From contig OZ251222.1 of NCBI GenBank assembly GCA_965240325.2, positions 3,100,001 through 3,164,000 of the forward strand: 64,000 nucleotides of DNA, given 5' to 3'. The position numbers and the translations under genes are program-made. This stretch comes from Rebecca billardiae RCC1528. Lineage: Eukaryota > Protista > Haptophyta. The notes beneath the pieces are model-generated. The model was not told the DNA's origin and searched no databases. It saw nothing but the letters and a program-made list of their open reading frames with translations. This document shows positions 8,487 to 61,345 of this stretch, piece by piece (position 1 is the first letter of the stretch; each line of letters starts with the position of its first letter).

Positions 8487-10076
8487 ATGGGCAACCGCGT
8501 GGCAACCCCCCGACGGCCTTTCCGCAACCCGTCGTACACCATCGACATCGTCGCGACACCGACCTCGGAGCAGGCCGACGACAGTGGTGACCCGGCCGAC
8601 CGGCCCCGCCTGACGCTCGCGTCGAGCGAGCCGCGCATGGCGTTTCCGAACGATGGCTCAGCGCTGCACGAGCGGACTGTCAAGTCGATCTGCGTCGGGG
8701 GCGAGTACGTGTTCGTGGGGAGCTGGGACCGCACCGCGTCCATGTGGGAGCTCGCCACTGGCGAGTTCGTCCGCTCCTTCCGCGGGCACAAGCAAGACAT
8801 CATCGGCATCTGCGTGTACGAGCAGTGGCTCTTCACGTGCGGCGACTGCGTCCGCATGTGGGACACTCGGACGGGGGACCAGCTCGCGGCTTTCGGTTCG
8901 AAGGACGAGGAGGTGACGGCCACGTTCTACACCGCCATCTGCGACTTCAGCGCGCCCGGCCTCATCGTGTGCGGGTTCTGCCGCGGCCCGCTGCAAATCT
9001 TCGACTTCCGCGCCATTGCGGACAAGTACCCGCAGCGGCGCGAGAGGGCGGCGGTCGCGGGCGAGCGGATGCGCCCGCAGTACGGGATGCGGCCTGTGCA
9101 CATCTTCGAGGGCCACACGGCGGGCGTGATGGGCATGGACCTGGGCAACGTCGGTGACGACCGCCTGCTCGTCAGCGCCTCGATCGACAAGACGGCGCGC
9201 GTGTGGTCGATCCGGCGCGGCGTGTGCACGCGCACGCTCGTGGGCCACGAGGCGCCCCTGCGCGACTGCAAGCTGCACCTCGGGCGCGTGTACACCGCCT
9301 CCCTCGACAAGACGGCGCGCGAGTGGGACGCAATCACCGGTGCGTGCACGCGCATCTTCCGCACGCCGGAGGGGCCCGTGCGCGCGCTCGCCCTTGTCGG
9401 CTCCGTCCTCTTCACGGCTGAGGCGACGCAGCAGCGCTCGCTCGACCAGCCGGCGTCATACGCCGTGCGCGAGTTCGACCTCGAGTCCGGCGAGCAGGTC
9501 GCCGCGCACGACGCGCTGCACGACGGCGGCATCTTCTGCTTGCACAAGCACGTCGCGCCCAACGGCACCGCCACGCTCTTCACCGGCTCGCAGGACCGCT
9601 TTGCGAAGCAGTGGGCGCTGCGTGAGCCTGGCGACGAGCCCGCGGCGACCGTGCGGCCGCCTCAGCCGGCGAGCGCGGAGCCCGCCGCGGAGGAGGAGAA
9701 GACGAGCGACGAGCACGAGGGCGAGGTGAGGCGCGAGCGCAGCAGCAGCAGCAGCAGCTACGCCTCGGCCAGCGCGCTCTCGCGCATGCCCTCCGAGGCG
9801 CAGAAGCTGCCCCCGGTCGACAACGCTGCGCTCAGCAGCGCAGCGCATGGCGAGGTGGCCCCTGAAGAGGCGGTCAAGCTCGTCGAGGCGGCACGCGCAC
9901 GCATCGAGGAGCTGGAGGAGACGACGCGATGCTTTGTGTGCATCGAGCGCCCAAAGAACGCGGCGTACATGCCGTGTGGCCACCAGTCGTGCAGGCGGTG
10001 CGCAGAGCGCTTCCGCACCAGCAACTGCCCGCTCTGCCGCCAACCCGTCACTGGCGTGCTCGCGCTGTACGGCTAG
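8487..10076 (+). CDS. WD40-repeat protein with C-terminal RING (C3HC4) finger; putative E3 ligase
   Basis: Repeated GH...SxDKTAxxW(D) WD40 units. C-terminal CFVC..PCGH..CRRC..CPLCR. The MGN start is a possible myristoylation site. Confidence 0.92.
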   Translation: MGNRVATPRRPFRNPSYTIDIVATPTSEQADDSGDPADRPRLTLASSEPRMAFPNDGSALHERTVKSICVGGEYVFVGSWDRTASMWELATGEFVRSFRGHKQDIIGICVYEQWLFTCGDCVRMWDTRTGDQLAAFGSKDEEVTATFYTAICDFSAPGLIVCGFCRGPLQIFDFRAIADKYPQRRERAAVAGERMRPQYGMRPVHIFEGHTAGVMGMDLGNVGDDRLLVSASIDKTARVWSIRRGVCTRTLVGHEAPLRDCKLHLGRVYTASLDKTAREWDAITGACTRIFRTPEGPVRALALVGSVLFTAEATQQRSLDQPASYAVREFDLESGEQVAAHDALHDGGIFCLHKHVAPNGTATLFTGSQDRFAKQWALREPGDEPAATVRPPQPASAEPAAEEEKTSDEHEGEVRRERSSSSSSYASASALSRMPSEAQKLPPVDNAALSSAAHGEVAPEEAVKLVEAARARIEELEETTRCFVCIERPKNAAYMPCGHQSCRRCAERFRTSNCPLCRQPVTGVLALYG

Positions 10077-19260: not shown

Positions 19261-20766
19261 ATGCCGGTCGCTCTCAGTCTCGTAATCATCGCATCTACGA
19301 CGCGCGTGTCGGTGCGCTCAGCAACGGACGTCTCCGAGCTGTGGGCGGCATCGCGCCTGCTTGCGACCAGCTTTGCCGATAACTCACCGGTATCCACGCC
19401 GTGGCGGCTCTGCACTCTCCGATACCCGGCGCTCGAGGCCAACGTCTTCTTTGACGTCGCTGGAGATCCAGCGATCGGCATCGCGCAAGCAGACGGCGGC
19501 GAGGTCGTCGGCTGCGCGCAACTGATTCCAGCACGCATGAAAGGTCCGTACGCCGCCAACACGCCGCCCACCGTCGCCTTCGTGCAAAATCTAGCCGTTG
19601 CTCAGCCATGCCGGCGGTCAGGGATAGGACGTTCGCTGATGGAGTGGTGTGAGGCTGCTGCAGCCGACGCGGGCCTGCAGGAGCTCTGGCTCGCGGCGGC
19701 CGAGGATCGGCCTGAGGTCGGCGCTTTCCATGCGTCGCTGGGCTACGAGCAAGCCGCGGCCGCCGCCGGTAATCGGCTGCTTCGAAAGCGCACGCCCGTC
19801 GGCGGCGCCACGCTGCCGAGCTCATCAGCAAACAGCAGCCCATCATCCCGCAAGGCCGTCCAAGCAGCTGATGGGAAGACCGAGCCTGCGGCGCGCTCTG
19901 ATGAGGGCATCTGCTTCACTGCCCTGGCCACTGAGATGGGTGTTCAGCTCATGTACGCCCTCGTGGCATCGGCGGGCATCAGCCTTCTCATCGCACCGCT
20001 GGGCGGACGCGGCTTGGATGCACTCTGTGCCATCGCGCCGCCGGGGGCGAGCTGGGTCCCTGCTACGGCGGACGGCGCCATCGGCCTCGTGTCGGCCGCC
20101 TGCATCCTTGGCCTGCGCCGAGATGAGTGGCTCGCTGAGCCGAGCGCGCCCATGACCAGCGCAGCTTCAGACGACGATGACGTTTCGGAGCGCATCCTCG
20201 AGCAGTCAGCTGTGGCACAGCTTGCGCCTGCTGCGCGGATTCTGCGCAGTGAGACGCGCAGTGCGAGCATCGTCGCTGCTGTGTGCGCCTGGCAGCTGCC
20301 TATCGCCGTCGCCGAGGAACTCTACTATCGCGGGCTGGTCCAGAACGGCTTGCAAGGCGCGCTGGCCGCTGGGCTCAGTACGCTCGCCGGCGCTGGCGAG
20401 GCGGGAATGGGCCTCGGCGCCACAGCCTTGGCTGAAGGTTTGGCTCTGGCCGTGTCCTCCCTCCTGTTTGCCATCGTGCACACGGCGTGGGTAGACGAGG
20501 TCAGTGCCGGCATGCCTGACGCACCGCCTGTTGTAGAGCTCGAGGAGGCCAAGCGCCGCTGGTTGGTGGAGTCTGGCGGCGCCTCGCTGGTGTTCGGCGC
20601 GCTCTTCATCGCGACATCGCACACGCTCTTTGCGCCTATCGCATGCCACGCTGCTCTGAACATTGTGCCCACCAGTGCACGTGAGCTGCGTCAGCGCCGC
20701 CAACGCGGCTCGTCAGGTGGCAGTGCCACGCTGCAAGCTACGGCAGCTGGGAGCGTTGACGATTAA
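19261..20766 (+). CDS. GNAT acetyltransferase fused to CPBP (Rce1/Abi-type) intramembrane protease
   Basis: GNAT motif A NLAVAQPCRRSGIGRSLM and ...FHASLGY. CPBP motifs EELYYRG, LLFAIVH and CHAALN with hydrophobic helices, all in one uninterrupted ORF. Confidence 0.85.
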   Translation: MPVALSLVIIASTTRVSVRSATDVSELWAASRLLATSFADNSPVSTPWRLCTLRYPALEANVFFDVAGDPAIGIAQADGGEVVGCAQLIPARMKGPYAANTPPTVAFVQNLAVAQPCRRSGIGRSLMEWCEAAAADAGLQELWLAAAEDRPEVGAFHASLGYEQAAAAAGNRLLRKRTPVGGATLPSSSANSSPSSRKAVQAADGKTEPAARSDEGICFTALATEMGVQLMYALVASAGISLLIAPLGGRGLDALCAIAPPGASWVPATADGAIGLVSAACILGLRRDEWLAEPSAPMTSAASDDDDVSERILEQSAVAQLAPAARILRSETRSASIVAAVCAWQLPIAVAEELYYRGLVQNGLQGALAAGLSTLAGAGEAGMGLGATALAEGLALAVSSLLFAIVHTAWVDEVSAGMPDAPPVVELEEAKRRWLVESGGASLVFGALFIATSHTLFAPIACHAALNIVPTSARELRQRRQRGSSGGSATLQATAAGSVDD

Positions 20767-29622: not shown

Positions 29623-32600
29623 CTAATCCGAGTCGGAGTCCATGCCCTCGAGGTCGCTCAGGTTGGCCGTGTCCGAGCCCGCCACGGAGGCGATCTCGTT
29701 GCGCGAGTTGCCCACGTCCGCGCGGCGCAGGCGCTCCTCCTCCTCCTCCTTCTGCTTGCGCTCCGCCGCCTCCTTCGCCTCGCGCGCCGCCCTCTCGCGC
29801 GCGAGCTTCTCCTCGTTGACCTTCTTGTCGATGCCGTGCACAACCTTGACGATGTCCGACACCTTGGCGTCCATCGCGACGACCTCCTCCTTGAGCGCGG
29901 AGGTCTTGTCCGCGATCTCGCGCTGCGAGGGCAAGGGCGCGCGGGGCGCGCGTGAGCGCGCGCGCGCGCGCGGCGCTGCCTGCCGCGCGCCGCGCGCACC
30001 TTGATGATGGTGAGCTGGCCGGCCCACTCGCGGCCGGCCACCTCCTCGTTGTCCTCCGTGCCCACGCGCAGCACGTGCGTCCACGCGAGCGTGCGCTCGC
30101 GGCGGAGGCGGAGCAGAGGGCCCATCGTGTTGTAGTACTCTGCGGGGCGCAGGGTGCGCGCGCGCGCGCGCGCGTGAGCGCCATCGGCACGGGCCGAGCG
30201 ACCGTCGGCCCAGTTTCGCGCGCGGTCGGTGCGCGCGCCGCGCCACGCACCGACGATGCAGGTGGCGTACAGCCGCAGCGTCTGCTCGGCGCGCTGCTCC
30301 TGCACGTGTGCGTACGAGTCGCCGAGCAGCGCGATGAGCGCGTTGAGCGCGACGACGCCGACGATGAGCATGAAGCCCACGAAGAGGACCCTACGCGTGG
30401 GCAGCGCGGCGCAGCGCCGCGAGGGCGGCGGCGGCTCAGCCACGGCGCGGCGCGCGTGGACGCGCGCGCGCGCCGCGGCTGCGCGCGTATTCGCAGCTGC
30501 GCTCATCACCTGAAGATGTCGGGGTTGATCGACGCCTCGAACTGGTCCGTGTCAAAGTCGCCGAAGATGCCCATGTTGAACGTGACGAGCAGCGCCTCCT
30601 TGAACGAGCCGAAGCCCTCCGGCTGCTTCTCGAGCGCGGCCGCCAGCTCGGACGCGACGGCGCCGGTGTCCATGGCCGTGGCGGCGGCCGCGCCCGCCGC
30701 GGTGTCGGCAGCGCCCGCGGCCGCGTCGGCGGCGCCGTCGGCGCCAACCTCGGCGAGGCGGCGCGCTGCCGCCACCACCGCGGACTCGAAGGGGAAGAGG
30801 GTGAGGAAGGACGAGGCGAAGAAGACGATGATGGTCGAGAGCACGACGATGAAGCCGAGCATGTCGCGCAGGTTCTGGATGAGCGCCATGATGAGCCAGC
30901 CGGTGAGCTCAAAGCCGCGCAGCACCTGCACGACGCGCACGAGCAGGAAGAGACCCGAGAGCGCGAGCAGCCCGGCGACGTTGTAGTGCTTGCCCTCCTC
31001 CACCGAGTAGAGCGGCAGCGTGTCGTACATCTCGCCGAACGTCGCCCACGAGAGCGAGATCACCAGCGCGATGTCGAAGAGGTTCCACGGGTTGAAGAGG
31101 AACTCGAAGGTGCCCGAGACGAGCCCCTCGACCAGGTCGTCGTACGCCTCGATCGCGCCGTACAGCTGCAGCGCCGAGTTGACGAAGGTGATGAAGAGCG
31201 TGACGAGGATGATGCGCCCCATCGTCGCCATCGTGTGCGCCACGCTCTCCGTCTCGTCCGAGAGCAGCGCCGCCTCCGACGTCGCCGAGCGGTGCCCCTG
31301 GTGCAGGTGGATCACGAAGTACATGTACCCGACAGCGGTGGCGAGGACGAGGAGCGACTTGATCACGTGCAGCGCAAAGAAGTGGTTGGTCCACAGCGCC
31401 TTCACCGTCTTGCCGATCGCCTGGTTGTCGAAGCCGCCCTCGGGCAGGTCGCGGATCATGTAGAGAAAGTGCTTCGACGAGAGGTGCGGCAGCCCGACGC
31501 GCAGCGCCGTCACCTCCGACTTGCCCGGCCGCTCCTCGTCCGGGTCTGGCTTCTCGGGCGGCGTCGGCTCGATCGGCTCGTTCTCCCACACCCAGTCCTC
31601 GACGTAGTCGCGGGAGCCGCGCATGAAGGGCGGGAGCGTCACGCCGCCGACCGTCCGGTCGGGCAGGTGCTCCGACGTCTTGTCCGCGCACCAGTGGAAC
31701 GCGGAGAAGACGTAGTACACGAGCATCTGCAGCAGGTAGGAGAGCGTCGCCAGCCGCACGTTCTCCTTCCACCAGAGCACAAAGCTCTCCCACCGCTCGA
31801 TCAGCCACTCGAACGCCTCGGCGATCAGCTTGCGGATGACGAGGAGGCCGCGCATGAAGGCCACGTAGTACGGGCCGCACGAGCCCGTCCACGCGGGTGC
31901 GACCACCGTCTCGTCCGCCGCGCGCACGCTCGCCGGGTCCTCCGCGCCCACGCCGCGGTTCTTGAGCGCCTTGGCCGCGCGGTGCCGCGTCGGGTCGGGG
32001 TCGTACTCGAGCCAGACGAGCGAGCCCTCGCCGCCCCACGTGGGGTACATGATCATCGTCTCGTCGCGCGTGAGCGGCCGGCCGTTCTTGTCCACCGCGT
32101 ACCCGATCGACGCGTTCGACATCTCGAGCTCGAGCTCGCTGAAGAAGTCGCTCACCGTGTTGACCATGCCGGCCGAGACGAGGTAGGGCAGCACGCGCTT
32201 GGCGACGGTGGCGCGCAGCAGCACGGGCGCGCGCGCCGAGGCGTGCAGCAGCGACTTGAGCACGTGGTGCGCGCGCACGCGCGCCGCGATGTTGAACGAC
32301 GGCAGCATCGGCGTGCCGCGCCGGCCGAGCCGCGAGATCATGTGCGGCACGAGTGGCAGCGCGGGCGCGTGCTTGAGCACCTCCTCGCACGCGGCGCGCT
32401 CGCGCTGCGAAACAAGCACGTCGAGCATGCGGCACTTGGAGTTGGGGTCGTCGAGGCCGGCCTCGCGCAGCTTGGACGCGACGTCGTCCTTGAGCCACTG
32501 CCCGCTCTCCTTGACCGGCGCGCGGTTCGCGCGCAGCGCGGCTCGCGCGCCCGCCGAGCCGCGCCGGTCCGACTGCGCGGGCGTCGGCTGAGAGGCGTGG

Positions 32601-35460
32601 CCGCCGTCCTCGACCGATTTGCGCGGCAGGATCGTGCTCGAGAGGCCGAGGTTGCCCTTCACGAGCGCGCCGAGGTTGGCCGCGCGCTCGAGGTCGAAGC
32701 GGCGCTTGCCGCCGTCCATCTTCGCCGCGAGCATCGCCGAGAGGTCCACCGGGTTGACGAGCGCCTGCTCGGTGCCGTCGATGGAGAAGAGCGTGCCCTT
32801 CTTCTCCTTGTTGGTGTCCAGCAGCACGCTCGAGTCGGGCGAGAAGCTCAGGCCGCGCGGCGGGTACTCGCGCTTGCCGCAGCGCTTGACGAGCATGTGC
32901 GTCATCACGTCGATGACGTACACGCCGCCGGCGTGCCCGCCCGCCGCGAGCAGCGCGTCGTCGCTCGAGAACGCGAGGGCGATCACGACCTCGCCGGGCA
33001 TCTCCGTGCGGCCGATCGACTCCTTGCTCTCGACGTCCACAAACACGATCACCTTCTCGCCGCCCACGGCGACGACGTCGCCGCGGTTGGAGCCGGCGAG
33101 CGCCTTCACGTCGTCCCCGCCGCCGAGGTCGAGCCGCGACTGGCGCACGAGCAGCTTGAGCTCGTCGTACGTCTCCGTCTTCTTGAGGAAGGCCAGCTCC
33201 GGGATGCGCGGCACGCGCGCCATCCACGTCTTGGGCCGCGCGCGCCGCAGCATCAGCGTCGCGCTCCGGTGCACGGCAGCGTCGACGTTGTACACGGCGA
33301 GCGTGTCCTCGGTGACGACCGCGAGCTCCCTGCCGCGCGGGCCGAACTTGAGGTCCTGGACCTCGCCGGTCAGGAGCTGCGACTCCTCCGCCGCCTTGAC
33401 CGTGATGTCCCACTTGGCGTTGACGCCCTTGGCGCCGCCGCTGTCGGCCTTGCCGTTGGAGTCCTTGTTGAGCGCGCGCACGTGCACCTTGGAGCGGCGC
33501 ACCTTGTCGGACGAGCCGCCGCCCCACGCCTGCGCGATGGCGAGCGAGCGCCCGTCGGGCGAGAAGACCAGCTTGACGATCTCCTCCTCGTGCGGGTAGT
33601 CAAAGTTCTTCGTCTCGGACGACGGGAACTCGCCGTTCGAGCCGCGCTCGTGCCCCTTGCCCGGGATGAACCTGAGCTCGAGCCGCGTCTGCTTCGTCTT
33701 GCCGACGTTCCACGCGTACGCAGTCGCGATCCAGCGCGAGTTGTCGAGCATCGCCATCGAGACGGCGAAGGCAGTCACCTTGCTCCGCGTCGCGAAGGTG
33801 CCGCGCTCCTGCCGGTCCGTCATCAGGTCGTACTTGACCAACTCGCCCTTGGTCGTCGCCGTGAGCAGGTGGCCGTCGCGCGTGAAGGAGCACACCTTGG
33901 CGAGCGGCACGTGCTCGTTCGTGCCCTGCGAGGTGGGCAGCTGGTGCAGCTTGGCGAGCGCCTCCTTGCGGTCGAAGTCGCACACGTACGCGGCCGCGGA
34001 GGACGCCGCCGCGCTCTGCTGCTTGGTCGCCGTCACGGTGGTGCCCATGCACGCGAAGAGCTGCCGGCCGCGGCTGGCTTTCTCGACGTCCTGCATGTCA
34101 TCGGAGGTGGCAGCGGCGGCGTCCTTGTCGCGCGGCGGGTGTGAGAAGGCGATAGACCACACGGCGGCCGACTCGAGCGCGATGCTGTACTTCACCTGCG
34201 CGCGGCACGCGCCCAAGGGGCGACGGGCACGCGCTTGAGCCCGGCCGAGCCCGGCGCCGGTCGCTGGTCGCCGGTCGCCGCGCGCGCACGCGAGGCGCGC
34301 GTGCGACTGCAGGCCGGGTCGCAAGGGGTGCACGCACGCGCACGCACCTCCCACTCCTTGGTGCTGACGAGCTCGACGCGGTAGCCGGCGGCCATGCCGA
34401 CGGCCAGCAGCGAGTCGTCCTCGTTGAAGTCCATGCACGTCACCTCGTGCTCGATGATCACGCGGCGGATGTAGTCCTTGCGGTCCTCCACGCTGCCCTT
34501 GTTGCTCGAGCTGTACACAAAGAGCTCGCGCTTGTTGTTGCCGCGCACACCCTGGTTGGCGGCGAGCACGAGCCACTTCTCCTGGTTGGCGTAGGTGATG
34601 ACGGCAGAGTCGAGGTCGCGCACGAATTGCGGCACGTTCATCTCGTTCGCCGCGCCCTTGTTCACCACCGAGGAGCCAGCGAGCGTCGGCTTGTACAGCG
34701 TGAGCTTCACGTCGCTCTTCTGGCCGCTGCCCGACAGCTTCTGCTGCAGCTTGCTCTTCGGCTTGGTGAGGAAGGCGATGGCAAACCTGTCCGCACTGGG
34801 GCTCACGGCGACGTAGTAGATCTTCTCGATATCGCCCGTCTTGGCCTGCAGCGGCACGTTGACGCCCTTGCCCACCGACGGCGCCTTGCCCGACGAGGGC
34901 GTGCTGAACGCGTACAGCCGCACCTCCTTCTGGATGCGCCGGTCCTTGCTCTCGTGCTGCTTCACGTTCTTGTCCTCGCCGTCACCCGCGCCCGAGAGGT
35001 GGTACATCGTGCCGCTCGTGCTCGTCAGCCACACCACGAGCAGGCTCGTGCCGCTCGAGGACGTCGCCATGGCCACGCGGTGATACGAGGTCGAGGCGCC
35101 GGGTGCCTGCGACTGCTGCACGTCGGCGAGCAGCTCCGGGCCCTTGAGCGCCTTCGCGTCGCTGTTGATCACCGCGAAGCCGCCTCGCCCGCCGACGGCG
35201 CAGACAGCGCCCTTCGATCCGATGTCCGACATCGACGAGACCGACTTGAGACGCACACTGCCACTCTGCCCGGCCAGCGGTGCGTACTTGATTGCGCGCT
35301 CGGCGAGGTTGGCATCGACAAACTTTGCCGCCGGCGTGTCAACGGGGGTATCTTCGGCGGGGGTTGGGTCCTCGAACTCGTCGCTCGTCTCGTCGTCATC
35401 GTCGATCAACGCCTCATCGTCCATCCCGTTGGAGCTCTTCGACCGCATGAACTTCTTCAT
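29623..35460 (-). CDS. TRP-family cation channel with large N-terminal WD40/beta-propeller region (~1792 aa)
   Basis: Exons 35460-34348, 34195-30510, 30390-30251, 30139-30000, 29922-29623 (5379 nt, all GT-AG, frame kept). WD-like blades FSPDGRSLAIA, ALAFSSDDALLAAGG, LSFSPDSSVLL. Channel motifs NPWNLFD, LRGFELTGWLIMALIQNLRDM, pore FNMGIFGDFD and S6/TRP-like LNALIALLGDSYAHV. C-terminal coiled coil. Confidence 0.88.
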
Positions 35461-41096: not shown

Positions 41097-41532
<436 letters not shown>

Positions 41533-47856: not shown

Positions 47857-47950
47857 CGCGCGGGTGCCAGTAGCTATACTATAGATACTAGCTAGGCCCC
47901 GGGTGCCAGTAGCTACTGGCACCCGGGCGGTAGCTACTGGCACCCGCGCC
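47857..47950. repeat. Perfect 30-bp palindrome with flanking half-copies
   Basis: CCCGGGTGCCAGTAGCTACTGGCACCCGGG at 47898-47927. Extra arms at ~47857-47876 and ~47930-47950. Confidence 0.9.
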
Positions 47951-49413: not shown

Positions 49414-49610
<197 letters not shown>

Positions 49611-55755: not shown

Positions 55756-57863
55756 TAAAGAGGGTTCAGGAAAGGTTGTGCCCCCGGCTTCGGCGGGTTC
55801 CCAGTGGCGGCATGCCGCCCGGCTCGTCGCCCCCACCACAACGATTGCCGGGTGGGCGGGTGGGCAGTTTTCGTGAATTCTCAAACGAAAGAACGAGTAC
55901 CCACATAGACAAACGAACTTACAGCCGTGCAAAACACACGCAGATGCCCGTTCTTCGGCAAAGAAAGGGGAGCCAAGCGGTACAAGCCGTACAAGTGATG
56001 AAAGTTGAAAGTACTTCGTTGCGCGGGTGGCGGGATCGCGAGGGCCCGCGGCGAATTGGAAACACCGAAAGACGGGCAGACGGCCGCGAAGGCGGCCAAA
56101 AGTTGGGTTGTGGGCGATTGCGGGGCGAGCGGTCTTGCGTCGCATCGCACGGGGCGCGCGCGGCCGTGCAGCTGGAAAGTGGTCTGGAGCGCCATCAGAG
56201 ACGTGAACTAACAGTAGCCAGCGTCGCTCGCTGCTACCTTGCCGCCTCTGGTCAGTGTGCGCGCCCACGCTGCCCGAATCGGCGAGCAGCGGGCGCCGCC
56301 GATCGCGTGCTGCAGCCGTGTGAATGAGTGACACTGGACAGTCAACGAGGAGTGAGCGAGGGCTGCTGACGGTGTATAGCCCTACTCAGTTGCGCGCCAT
56401 GCGGCCTCGCACGTCTGCGCAAGAGCTACAGCACGAGCCGTCGTAGCTTTTCAAAGCGTTCCGACTAGCCACAAGTCCATCCGTGGCCGAGCCGTCTCAC
56501 GAGGAGCTGTAGGTGAGCGGGTTGCGAATACTGCCCTGAGCGCATCCCATGCGCACATCCTGCAACCAGCAATGCCGCACGAGCATGCAGACGTTTGAGG
56601 CATTATCCATCTGTGTCGCCGTCGCGTCGCGGGTACGGCGGTTCCGCTGACTAGCTCGGTTTGGCGCAGGCGGCCTCCTGGACGTGTGTGCTTGGATTGG
56701 TGGCGTACTTGTCGTGACTACGGGGGACAGCACATTGCGATTGCATGTGTACATAGCCACGCCGAGCTGCACAGCGCGCCGCGCGTCAGCCCAGCAGTGC
56801 ACCACGCTCTCATCGTGCGGCCCGCCGCCACAGCGGGGCGCCGCTTTCACCGCGAGAGCGGCCGAGACTGTACCCAAGCGACGTTGGGTGACGGGGGGCA
56901 CGGCGCAGTGGGACGCAACCAATCAATCTGAGGCTGGCAGGCCGCCTACACGGGCACGTCGGCAGCTACACCAGCGCGCACCGCGCACGGCAGTGCCGCC
57001 CCCCCCTCGCTCGCAGGCTACCGCCGTGCGCCTGCCAGCCGCCCACCTTCGAGCCCCCCCGAAAGCTCGGGGCTCGCGGTTTGCCCTGGCTTCGCGCAGT
57101 GGAGCGCTGGCAAAGCTTTGAGCCAGGTTGGAACTCCTAATCAAAGCGCTTGGCGAGAGCCTGAAATAATTGAAGTACTCCGATTACTTGGGGTACCCCA
57201 AGTAAGTTACTGGCTTAGATTCAGGGTCTGAAATGCCGTTTTCGATTCTCACGAAAATTGCCTCCCTCCCCACCCGGCAATCGTTGTGGTGAGCGCACCT
57301 CGCCTGGCTACTGTGAGCGCTCGGAGTCCCGGCGTCATCGCCGGATCGTCCGGCGGGGTGGATGCCGGGCAAGTAGACACCGATTGGAAGGGCATGCGCT
57401 GCATCGGCATGCTGTCATCTGTCGTCTCTGCCACCTTGTCCTCGACGCGCGGTCTGCACTTCAGTAAAACGTGACAGCTTGCACGTGCTGCCCGTTGCAC
57501 GCCCGAAATAGGTGTGTGTGCTTGCTGACGCCGCTGGAGTAGCAACGCGCAGCGCTTTGGCCCTGGTAGAGAAGAGCCGAGCGGCTGATGCGTCCTGTAG
57601 CTGCTCTCATTTCTATTTTGAACCGTGCACGCGATGACGATCGGCATCCGATGGCTGCCGCGTTGCTCACGGTGTGGCTTACAGGCTGTCGTGAGAGGCG
57701 TGAGAGGGCTACTCGGCTGGACGGTGGGTATGGGGCGATGCTAGGGCCTCTCTAGCGACGCGCAGGCCCGACAGCGGCGCGTGGCGTTGCGCTCATCGCT
57801 ATTTCAAGCGGCCATCGGCCGGGCGGTCGCTGCTGGGGCACAACCTTTCCTGAACCCTCTTTA
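55756..57863. mobile_element. Non-autonomous TIR DNA transposon (~2.1 kb) with probable TA target-site duplication
   Basis: Perfect 30-bp inverted match GTAAAGAGGGTTCAGGAAAGGTTGTGCCCC (55755-55784) / 57835-57864. Best read as 27-bp TIRs plus a TA TSD within a GTAC site. No transposase inside. Confidence 0.85.
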
Positions 57864-58037
57864 CAGCTCGCCGAACTTTGGCAAGGACCAACGATATTCA
57901 TACTATATCCATGTTTGTTTTATTCAGCCGTAAAAAAAAATGCTCCAAGGCTGGGTCACGCGGTGCCGCCGCCATCGTGCTCACTTCGCTGCACGCGGGT
58001 GTACGATCGGAGGCCACCGCGCGCGGGACCAGGATCC

Positions 58038-59004
58038 ATGCCGCGCTCCGAGCCTGGTGCGGAGGTGACCTTCTCGCTGCACGTGCGGAACATTCCTTAC
58101 GACATATCGTGCGTGCGCTGCCTCCTGGCGTTCACCTCCATGCGCTCCCATGGTTCACCCGCAGCCAAGAGGTCGAAGAGGCGGTCTTGGCTGAACGCTC
58201 CCATGACCCAATCCTGCGCGCCCGCCCTCCCCACACTGCGCAGCCAAGACCGCCTCTTCGACCTCTTCGGGGAGCACGGAAAGGTGACTGACGTGTACAT
58301 ACCGAAAGACTACCACACGGGCCGTATCCGCGGGTTCGCGTACGTCCAGTTTGAGAGCAAGGAGGGCGCAGAGCTGGCGCGCTCGAAGTGTGATGGCATG
58401 AGTGTTGATGGCCGCGCGCTCGGCGTGGAGTGGGCCCTCGGCACGCGCAAAGCCAGCAGCGAGATGGCCGCACGGGATGGCGACACTGGAAGGTAGCAGC
58501 GCGTTCCGATATCTGCGCACACCCCTGGCACCACCCGCGACGCCTGCCCATCGCACTCACGCGGCATGCGACCGCTCTCGTGTCCGCCGCTGCGCGCGCA
58601 GGGGCGGTGGCTACCGGCCGAGTGGCGACCGCCGAGGCTACGACCGGGGCAACCACGAGTCCAGCAGCTACGATCGGCGTTACGATCGGCGCGAAAGGGG
58701 GGGCGAGCGGGACTACTGTGACCGGCGAGACCGGGACTACGACGATCGGCGGGACTACTCCAGGCGGCGTGAGTATGACAGGCGCGGCGACGACCGGCGA
58801 GACTATGATGAGGACAGGCCTCGGCGCGACTACGACCGGCGCGACTACGACCGCTACAGCGACGATCGGCGCGACTATGATCGGCGTGACTATGATCGAC
58901 GCGACTACGACCGACGAGACTCCCGCGAAGATTCGCGCCCCCGCGAGCGTGCTCCCAGCGACGACGAGGACGGCACTCGCGACCGCCGCCGCCAGCACGA
59001 CTGA
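58038..59004 (+). CDS. SC35-like (SCL) SR-family RRM splicing factor with RD/RDY-rich tail (240 aa)
   Basis: Exons 58038-58108, 58244-58492, 58602-59004 (723 nt). RNP2 SLHVRNI, DVYIPKDYHTGRIRGFAYVQF (RNP1), then RKASSEM and DRRDY repeats. Confidence 0.92.
58161..58267 (+). promoter_or_regulatory. Intronic antisense copy of the 3' splice site plus duplicated upstream acceptor
   Basis: 58167-58193 is the exact reverse complement of 58241-58267. GCAGCCAAGA is present at both 58161 and 58240. Confidence 0.6.
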
Positions 59005-61345
59005 TCAGTGATCTTGGTTGGAATGCGGAGTCGGAGGGAGCACTTGCGTATCATCGTGCATTTGGTCCAGTTTGGTTTGCCGAGGACCAGCGACGGTCGC
59101 TGTGTTCGCGTGGCAATACGCTGCAGCGGTCTCAGTCTTCGAGTGCGGCGCGGCAGCCGTTTGAGTTTGGCCGGTGCCATCACCTACTTGTGAAGTCGGA
59201 CTTGACTCTTTGAGGGTGCCCAGCAGGTAGGTGCCAGGCCGCACCGCGGCCACCGGGCCGGAGCCGGAGACGGCGGGGTCCACGACCACGGCCCGCGGGC
59301 CGCGCGGACCGGGCCCAGGCGCCCGCGCCCGGGCCCGGGGCTCGGCGGGCCGCCGGCCGGGCACCGCGGCCGCTGCCGCGGCCGCCCCGCTCAGCCGCTG
59401 CGCTGAGCCGTGACCCCCGTGACCCCGTGACTCACTGACTGACAGTGACACGCCTTGCACGGCTCGGTGAGTCAGTCGTCCGTCCGTCCGTCCGAGCCTG
59501 CGCCGGTCTGGCACGGCAGTAGCATGATTATTCGATTGCAAACGTTTTTAATAAAATTATAGCTGCTTATTAATAATTATTATAGCTATATATATACTGA
59601 CTACCGCCGCTGCCCGAACGGTACTGGCTACTCTCGTGCTCGGCGCCGGCACGGTATTACGACGTCACGGTATAGGCCGTATAGGGCTGATAGAACTAGA
59701 AGCCTGACTGAGCCTGAGTCCTCACGGAGAATAATATATATATATAACCGCGGGTGATGAATGCCATACCCGTGGTTCATTCCGATACTCTAGTCGTCAA
59801 TCAACTGATTGAGTGATAGTGGTAACCGTCTCTCACTCTCTGAGCCGTCTCCGAGCTCGGAGCTGGCCGCGCATCATCAGCGAGTACTTAGTAACTTACT
59901 CTGTTAGACTTATATAGTCCTCTCTAGTCTGTTACACGGTATCTAGCAGTAGAGTCTTATACGCGTTATACTTAGATGACGAGAATAGAGACTAGAAAGT
60001 AGACTTTACTTGAGTTAGCAGTATTATCATCGACTATATCGTCGCCTGCCTGGAAGCCTGTGCTGTAAGCAAAGTGCGTCTAGCTGATTAAGTTCTCAAT
60101 CTGGTCGTTGACGACGAATAATCGGTGCTACGACGATAGTAATTTAAGTAAACTGCCTGCTAATAAGCCTGTTAACTGAGTTACTCAGAGTAGTCTGCCG
60201 CATCTTGGCAATCTGTCGGTGTCGTCGTACCGCGTACGTCATCTGCTTCTGCTGATCACGTCATTTACGACTCCGGCGTCATACGAATAGTAACAATTAT
60301 TATTACTAAACTTGGAAACTTAATTCGCGTGGCCCGCGGGCGCCGCCGGCAGGCGGACGCCTCACTGGTGACTACTAACTGGGCCGCTGCTGGGTCATAC
60401 AGGTACGGTAACAGGTGCCACTGCCAGGTCCGGTGACGCCACGGGTCGCGCGTGATCTGGATATCAGCAGTCATACAGGCAATCTAATCACTGTCAGACT
60501 CATCACTCATCAGCAGTAGGTAGGCGCCTGTACGGCCGGACCGAGTGAGTCGTGACTCCGTATTATTACAGTATAGAGTGAGACTGTGAGTAGCGGCAGC
60601 GCTGCTGCCATCGGACGGACGAATCATCATATATATATGTTAATTAATTAATTAATTAATGGCGTCGTCGTACGACGACTCGTCACTGCTAATAGTATAT
60701 ATAATAATGGCCCGCGGTGCAGGGCGGAGCGCGTAGCGTGGAGCCCCGCCGGGGGCCCTCACTACGTTGTCAAAAAGACTCTTTTGATCAAAGAAAAGGG
60801 GACGGGGGACGATTTTGACGAGGGCTTTGGAGGGTGAATTTTCGCTAATTTTCGAGGGGTACCGTACATTGCTGTCTATCCGCAAGGAGCGATTGACGAA
60901 ATAGGCGCGCCCGGACGTGAGTAATAAGAAAGATCGAAGGCCGTCACATTGTCAGTAAACGAATCTGCGCCATTGTGGTAATGCCCGGGGCCGGACTCCG
61001 CCCAGCACCAGACAACAGTGATCCACTCCGGACTAGGGGCGGTCCGGCGATCGCTCCCCGCGATGAGTCGATGACCAGTGGACCTCTCGACCCGCAGTCA
61101 AACGCCGGCGTGACGCGGCGCGGGCGCGCGCGCACTTGTTTGTCGCGCGCAAGACAGATCAGAAATCCTGATTCCTGGACGCGCACGCGAACCGGCTCGG
61201 CATGCGGAACGCGTTGATGCGCTTGGGGACGCACGCGACATCGGGCCGTTCTGAAACGACACCGGGCGAAACTCTACCGCGTGCCACGCGCGGACCGCAG
61301 GCCGCGTGACGACTGCGACACTGCGCGACGCGAACGAAGGAGCAG

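Follow-up and report, generated by a model that had tools for sequence, protein, structure and literature searches.

An intron–exon inverted repeat over the first splice acceptor of an SRSF2-like gene points to a young duplication-inversion

Introduction

Structure in a pre-mRNA can mask a splice site, as in the 3' splice-site thermosensor of yeast APE2 and the stem at MAPT exon 10. In genes for SR and SR-like proteins, unproductive splicing followed by NMD is well known from the autoregulation of SRSF2/SC35, the intronic GAAG repeats of plant SCL33 and the ultraconserved poison exons. Concealed branch sites and a poison exon are controlled by RNA structure in SF3B3 (PMC11162794), and the intron structures of HsfA2 are temperature-dependent (PMC8824230). 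Non-productive alternative splice sites are widespread as splicing noise in S. cerevisiae (PMC3983031), and single template-switch events are documented as a source of perfect RNA hairpins (Monttinen & Loytynoja 2022, PMC8794818; for de novo miRNA hairpins, PMC10710096).

Here we describe an SRSF2-like gene in a 64-kb stretch of DNA (hereafter the window, meaning the whole stretch that was analysed) whose intron 1 carries a perfect antisense copy of its own acceptor and of the start of exon 2, next to a spare acceptor. Its hairpin has in common with those of SF3B3, HsfA2, APE2 and MAPT that a stable local stem lies over a splice signal and could bias site choice. Those structures have been probed experimentally; they are conserved and moderately stable and, as a rule, imperfect, whereas the hairpin described here is perfect, extremely stable, lineage-specific and known from sequence and computed folding. 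With the unproductive splicing of SR genes the locus shares an RRM of the SRSF2 type, an alternative acceptor that is predicted to bring in a premature stop well before the last junction, and purine-rich GAAG-type motifs adjoining that acceptor; it differs in a tail that is RD/Y-rich, not RS-rich, in the lack of conservation in a distant ortholog and in being predicted from sequence. In its nearby duplicate site, with frameshifted, NMD-prone products predicted and no regulatory purpose implied, it also resembles the splicing noise of S. cerevisiae and, if yeast is assumed to be relevant to haptophytes, the spare acceptor would be expected to be a site of this noise type (PMC3983031). As in the hairpins attributed to template switching (PMC8794818; PMC10710096), a reverse-complement copy lies tens of bases away, the arms are perfect, there is microhomology at the switch point and the new stem could have formed in one event; the present case differs in that one arm consists of coding exon and splice acceptor, and in that direct duplicates were also left, which would make the event a duplication-inversion.

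Results and Discussion

The gene encodes an SRSF2-like protein

The gene model comprises three exons (Table 1). The RRM, uninterrupted when read from the productive intron 1 junction, matched Pfam RRM_1 (E 4e-16) with its key motifs fully conserved, and the closest solved single-RRM chains were those of SRSF2 (2lea) and SRp46, with Tra2-beta and SRSF10 coming next. The tail, 135 residues long, contains 45 R, 36 D, 15 Y and 9 S; its dipeptides include 3 SR, 12 RD and 17 DR and no RS. By the definition that Manley and Krainer are said to have given in 2010, an SR protein has one or two N-terminal RRMs and, reportedly, a C-terminal RS domain, 50 or more residues long, whose RS/SR content exceeds 40%. 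An N-terminal RRM is present here, and the RS content is not reached by the Arg-Asp-Tyr-rich tail, so the gene is SR-like and not a canonical SR gene. The first-pass annotation had spoken of an SR splicing factor; its SRSF2-type RRM stands and the canonical SR assignment does not, and, judged by motifs and composition, the product is best named an SRSF2-like RRM protein with an RD/Y tail.

Intron 1 has a length that is a multiple of 3 and holds no in-frame stop, so that its retention would add 45 residues to the protein. Such an mRNA would escape NMD, and the RRM it encodes would carry the 45 extra residues between strand 1 and helix 1. This openness is probably a coincidence, since by base composition the chance of 45 stop-free codons is ~0.3.

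Table 1. Coordinates in the window of the SRSF2-like gene and of the repeats and splice sites around its intron 1
Feature	Position	Strand	Description
Whole gene	58038-59005	+	three exons, 240 aa (translation)
Exon 1	58038-58108	+	ATG 58038-58040; ends after 2 bases of a Ser codon; encodes RNP2 strand of RRM (translation)
Intron 1	58109-58243	+	GT..AG, 135 nt
Upstream direct-repeat unit	58143-58170	+	28 nt; ends in spare acceptor plus 6 exon-like bases
Spare ('decoy') acceptor	58160-58170	+	exact 11-nt copy of 58239-58249; AG 58163-58164
Small hairpin	58162-58193	+	9-bp stem 58162-58170 / 58185-58193, 14-nt loop; buries spare AG
Intronic arm	58167-58193	+	antisense copy of productive acceptor CAG plus first 24 exon 2 bases
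Long-hairpin loop	58194-58240	+	47 nt; C-rich tract without AG; UGAC branch-point-like motif, A at 58206
Exonic arm	58241-58267	+	CAG (last 3 intron bases, with productive AG 58242-58243) plus exon 2 bases 1-24
Exon 2	58244-58492	+	remainder of RRM, SRSF2/SC35 type
Premature TGA via spare acceptor	58289-58291	+	frame +79 (translation)
Intron 2	58493-58601	+	GT..AG, 109 nt; ortholog has an intron at the equivalent place
Exon 3	58602-59005	+	Arg/Asp/Tyr-rich tail; TGA stop 59003-59005
Read-through ORF across intron 1	58038-58493	+	P0121/P0122, 152 aa

Intron 1 holds an inverted and a direct copy of its own acceptor

A repeat finder returned a perfect inverted pair linking intron 1 with the start of exon 2, 27 nt long, 100% complementary and with its arms 47 nt apart. 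Among inverted repeats of normal complexity with spacers of up to 300 nt this pair is the longest in the 64-kb window, the runner-up measuring 19 nt. Inverted-repeat maxima in 30 second-order Markov shuffles of the window were 12-16 nt, and among 20,000 simulated intron interiors inverted matches to the acceptor/exon stretch reached 13 nt at most. The repeat is real and far beyond chance. Direct matches of at least 11 nt, the length of the exact copy at the spare acceptor, arose by chance in 34 of the 20,000 simulated interiors. A second direct repeat (58196-58205 = 58143-58152; on a wider reading, 58143-58159 against 58196-58209) is collinear with the first, and by eye the two direct units (58143-58170 and 58196-58249) differ only by length changes of 4 nt and 30 nt. 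The arrangement reported in the first-pass annotation was thus recovered in full by the repeat finder: the antisense copy with its 47-nt loop, the duplicate acceptor, and the alternative 9-bp pairing that makes the two hairpins mutually exclusive. No earlier description of this intron/exon hairpin came to light.

The intronic arm contains two GAAGAGG motifs, directly downstream of the spare acceptor. Purine-rich motifs of this type are bound by SR-type proteins, so feedback through them is conceivable. Within the loop, the A of the UGAC motif lies 37 nt upstream of the productive AG and, as we read it, would be the branch point. Elsewhere in the window, overlapping perfect inverted repeats of 15-19 nt occur on one GGGTGCCAGTAGCTA-like motif at 47858-47949, the only short-range inverted-repeat cluster above chance besides the 27-nt pair.

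Both the inverted repeat and the 152-aa ORF through intron 1 were present in two independent Logan assemblies (runs ERR14847148 and ERR14847151), which settles an earlier concern that the inversion might be private to the genome assembly. The two contigs are collinear with 57835-59366, one being 100% identical and the other carrying four SNPs (58141, 58584, 58759 and 59202), none of them in either arm. The T>G change at 58759 replaces Ser by Ala in the RD/Y tail, and the remaining three fall in introns 1 and 2 and in the 3' UTR. All three exons keep their reading frame in both read sets, and both arms are unchanged between the two haplotypes or strains, leaving no variation able to show covariation. 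We take the contigs as DNA because both span both introns and intergenic DNA and end at repeats, and because no RNA run was listed as a source of the sequence.

The repeats are consistent with a template switch

The last four bases of the direct acceptor copy, AAGA (58167-58170), are complementary to TCTT (58264-58267), and the inverted copy runs on from exactly that point back to 58241. The locus therefore combines a nearby reverse-complement copy beyond chance (27/27 at 47 nt) with 4-nt microhomology at the switch point and a junction of the kind left by a single jump. The 27/27 identity, the 11-nt direct acceptor copy and the second, collinear direct repeat together point to one young duplication-inversion by template switching, its youth being suggested by complete identity between the exon and an intron arm that is free to drift. 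Such an origin had been proposed in the first-pass annotation, and the microhomology and second direct repeat lend it support.

In the event that we propose, the growing strand would have copied the acceptor and six exon bases, jumped to the opposite strand at the AAGA/TCTT microhomology and copied 23 bases backwards. Copying would then have resumed upstream and taken in the 3' part of the intron again, with the outcome that a direct spare acceptor, an antisense copy of the acceptor and exon start, and the original acceptor stand in a row. The two length differences of the direct units weigh against this proposal, as they need either a multi-step single event or later mutations. Two histories of the ancestral intron could accommodate them. 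It may have been ~56 nt long, with the spare site as the original acceptor and a later gain of 30 nt, or ~82 nt long, the upstream copy having lost sequence later; the latter is mildly favoured, since the intron of the ortholog described below has 80 nt. A mobile-element origin of the intron was considered unlikely, because no other copies were present in the 64-kb window: the intron, the loop and the 79-nt segment between the two acceptors had no second copy there beyond chance matches of 9-12 nt, and the multiple dispersed copies that mark an introner or MITE were not found within it.

A distant ortholog shares the intron and lacks the hairpin

The best 150 matches of an exhaustive representative search were dominated by multi-RRM proteins, and the sole usable one among those listed was a single-RRM protein of the same architecture (P0266), 57% identical over the RRM. 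Its gene lies on a genomic Logan contig of 3.7 kb (L005) and has the same three exons, and the protein ends in the same kind of tail. Intron 1 of this ortholog (2462-2541, 80 nt) interrupts the same codon in the same phase after the same exon 1 end, and intron 2 (2797-2897) lies at the equivalent place. No intron/exon inverted repeat and no duplicate acceptor were found in the L005 gene, and the corresponding region folded no better than shuffles (z = +0.79). The two first introns could not be aligned, their similarity being no greater than in 141 of 1000 shuffles; a 16-nt intron similarity near the upstream direct unit, entertained as a clue to the ancestral acceptor, was dropped as being at that same chance level (141/1000).

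Other homolog searches used partial queries, namely exon 2 alone and the 152-aa read-through ORF. Exon 2 alone found no relatives in a word search, the read-through ORF returned its own two alleles only, and the JGI metagenomes held nothing closer than 49% identity. The uridine kinase gene that neighbours the SRSF2-like gene in the window has a counterpart in Pavlovales sp. CCMP2436, and within 10 kb of that counterpart there was no SR-like gene.

On this comparison intron 1 is old and the hairpin lineage-specific, since the position and phase are the same in L005 and the repeat is absent there. The conservation looked for in an autoregulatory element was thus not found in this distant ortholog, which at this distance shows that the hairpin is not an ancient conserved device; a young function within the lineage would remain compatible with an ortholog at 57% RRM identity. 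The best inverted pair within the L005 gene itself joins exon 2 bases +4 to +17 (2545-2558) to a stretch of intron 2 (2823-2836) that holds an acceptor-like GCGCAG|G, with 13 of 14 bases complementary; this pairing is probably due to chance in GC-rich sequence.

The long stem is computed to succeed the small hairpin during transcription

When folded, 58160-58270 adopted the long stem at -60.3 kcal/mol (z = -8.35; 0 of 200 shuffles as good), which by computation places a stable stem over a splice signal, as in splice-site masking. The small hairpin alone reached -18.4 kcal/mol (z = -2.1), leaving a gap of ~40 kcal/mol between the two. In the long-stem state the productive AG was computed to be unpaired with a probability of at most 0.005 at 20 and 37 C, and the spare AG was often free in the equilibrium fold. 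We also folded a nascent-chain series at both temperatures, in which transcripts began at the ATG and ended at successive 3' positions. The small hairpin, with the spare AG paired, dominated while the 3' end lay at or before ~58250, and the long stem dominated from 58256 on, so that ~12 exon bases suffice.

Of the two claims made earlier about the fold, that the stem buries the productive AG and that the RNA has two states to switch between, the computed pairing agrees with the first and the energies do not support the second, as the long stem takes over once those exon bases exist. Because the energies are so one-sided, the model has no equilibrium bistability and predicts an ordered co-transcriptional succession, with the changeover occurring within ~10 bases of transcription. 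The small hairpin comes automatically with the two copies: direct and inverted copies of the same 9 bases are necessarily able to pair, so it is not independent evidence of design. The productive AG forms the second and third base pairs from the loop end of the long stem. In our reading of the model, its recognition would need opening of the top 3 bp alone, since the AG lies at the loop-side end and the AG-free C-rich tract and the UGAC motif are in the loop.

Splicing across the hairpin and its possible meaning

Translation confirmed the coding consequence described in the first-pass annotation: use of the spare AG is predicted to add 79 nt, shift the frame and end at a TGA upstream of intron 2, ~200 nt before the exon 2/3 junction. 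In silico, this stop lies beyond the ~50 nt upstream of the last junction (58492) at which NMD is expected. The intron ending at the spare acceptor would measure 56 nt, of which 25 nt separate the donor from TTCAC, the branch-like motif in the best place, and would be shorter than the three other introns on which this comparison rests (80, 101 and 109 nt).

We favour, with moderate confidence, the view that a young, lineage-specific duplication-inversion is a tolerated or mildly costly accident, which may modulate splicing efficiency and is not an evolved switch. Such a tolerated footprint is the most economical reading given the intact frame in both read sets, the perfect arms and the absence of conservation. 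The nascent transcript would first fold the 9-bp hairpin over the spare AG, as computed, and after ~12 exon bases would refold into the 27-bp stem of about -60 kcal/mol, in which the productive AG lies next to the loop while the branch-point and pyrimidine region stays within the 47 nt of the loop. We infer that productive splicing still predominates, because that region could be bound before the exon arm is made, only the top 3 bp must open, and helicases may assist. The spare acceptor would then give at most a minor frameshifted product, removable by NMD. Several points weigh against this reading. The modelled equilibrium fold, with the productive AG paired and the spare AG often free, would at face value favour the unproductive site, and the sole ortholog is distant (57% RRM identity), so that absence of the repeat there would be compatible with a lineage-specific function. 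The GAAGAGG motifs of the antisense arm, which make feedback conceivable, and the two length changes between the direct units count against it as well. If splicing simply copes, which we think likelier, the locus would be a natural test of spliceosome tolerance in vivo, posed by a perfect 27-bp stem starting at exon base +1. It is also an example of how duplicate splice sites arise.

We consider it unlikely, if still worth keeping in view, that the structure is an evolved poison-acceptor switch in which the gene's own product, temperature or helicases balance the small hairpin against the long stem. Under this logic, the long stem would lead to use of the spare AG, a frameshifted mRNA, NMD and lower output, and the small hairpin to productive splicing. 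The geometry and frame consequences are exactly as such a switch requires, including a premature stop ~200 nt upstream of the last exon junction, and the computed folding order (small hairpin first, long stem later) and the GAAGAGG motifs directly after the spare acceptor fit as well; structure-controlled poison splicing is moreover known in splicing-factor genes, for example SF3B3 (PMC11162794). A gap of ~40 kcal/mol, with the productive AG unpaired at a probability of 0.005 or less and no equilibrium bistability, is however hard to reconcile with a balance between two states, and the small hairpin follows by necessity from the two copies. The feature is also absent from the nearest ortholog, its perfect arms indicate youth and not long maintenance, and the spare intron of just 56 nt would leave 25 nt between donor and TTCAC.

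It is quite unlikely, in our estimate, that the locus is instead a newborn regulatory device, in which one template switch made the poison acceptor, the masking hairpin and the competing 27-bp stem at once. The choice of acceptor would then be kinetic, and candidates for setting it are transcription speed, helicases or the gene's own protein bound to the new GAAGAGG motifs. If this were true, an unproductive-splicing feedback loop could arise in one mutational step; and should splicing use the spare acceptor, with the stems biasing the choice, the locus would be a natural splicing-control structure from a single mutational event. It would link template-switch mutagenesis with the unproductive splicing of splicing factors, fields that rarely meet, in a case from the haptophytes, where splicing regulation is almost unstudied.

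We likewise give little credence to a crippling insertion, with the 27-bp stem mostly blocking the productive acceptor of a poorly expressed, paralog-backed and decaying copy. The equilibrium fold that buries the productive AG would agree with this, as would the amino-acid-changing SNP in the tail (58759) between haplotypes or strains; yet a single SNP in a low-complexity tail says little, neither read set shows a break of the frame in any of the three exons and the key motifs of the RRM are fully conserved.

That the hairpin serves as a small-RNA source, its 27-bp duplex being diced and the strand from the intron arm, antisense to the gene's own exon 2, silencing the gene, is very improbable. 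A perfect 27-bp stem with a 47-nt loop has a suitable form, and new miRNA hairpins have been documented to arise by template switching (PMC10710096). The Rfam miRNA matches, hairpin-shaped and on the minus strand, were all sub-threshold, however, with best scores of 23-24 bits far below the gathering thresholds of 71-84, and the feature is not conserved in L005. Finally, fold-back artefacts are known in long-read assemblies, but a chimeric read or other assembly or sequencing artefact is effectively refuted here, because the same sequence is present in the independent assemblies of ERR14847148 and ERR14847151, one of them from a different haplotype or strain.

Surroundings of the gene

The lineage appears, from the sequence of the window, to be a pavlovophyte-like haptophyte. 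The uridine kinase gene next to the SRSF2-like gene shares 65% identity with its counterpart in Pavlovales sp. CCMP2436 and 57% with that in Prymnesium. At 64.7%, the GC content of the window is below that of Diacronema lutheri, for which 73% has been published (PMC8379373).

The space between the SRSF2-like gene, on its promoter side, and the uridine kinase gene contains a 2.1-kb segment (55756-57865) with perfect 30-nt terminal inverted repeats at its ends (55756-55785 and 57836-57865) and additional, imperfect inverted similarity in sub-terminal positions. A target-site duplication was not clearly recognisable at this segment, and Logan contigs break exactly at its terminal repeats; it is probably a non-autonomous fold-back or TIR element. 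On the other side of the gene, Logan contigs end in a very GC-rich low-complexity block (59230-59400), which precedes a sharply AT-rich stretch (59540-59600) ~500 nt past the stop codon. Long pure (TA)n microsatellites stand out in the 65% GC window at 41145-41287 (~140 nt) and 49419-49529 (~110 nt). Three large single-exon ORFs encode unusual domain pairs: WD40 with a C-terminal RING finger (8487-10073), a GNAT acetyltransferase with an Rce1-like CAAX protease (19261-20763), and WD40 with an ion-transport domain (30509-34576, minus strand).
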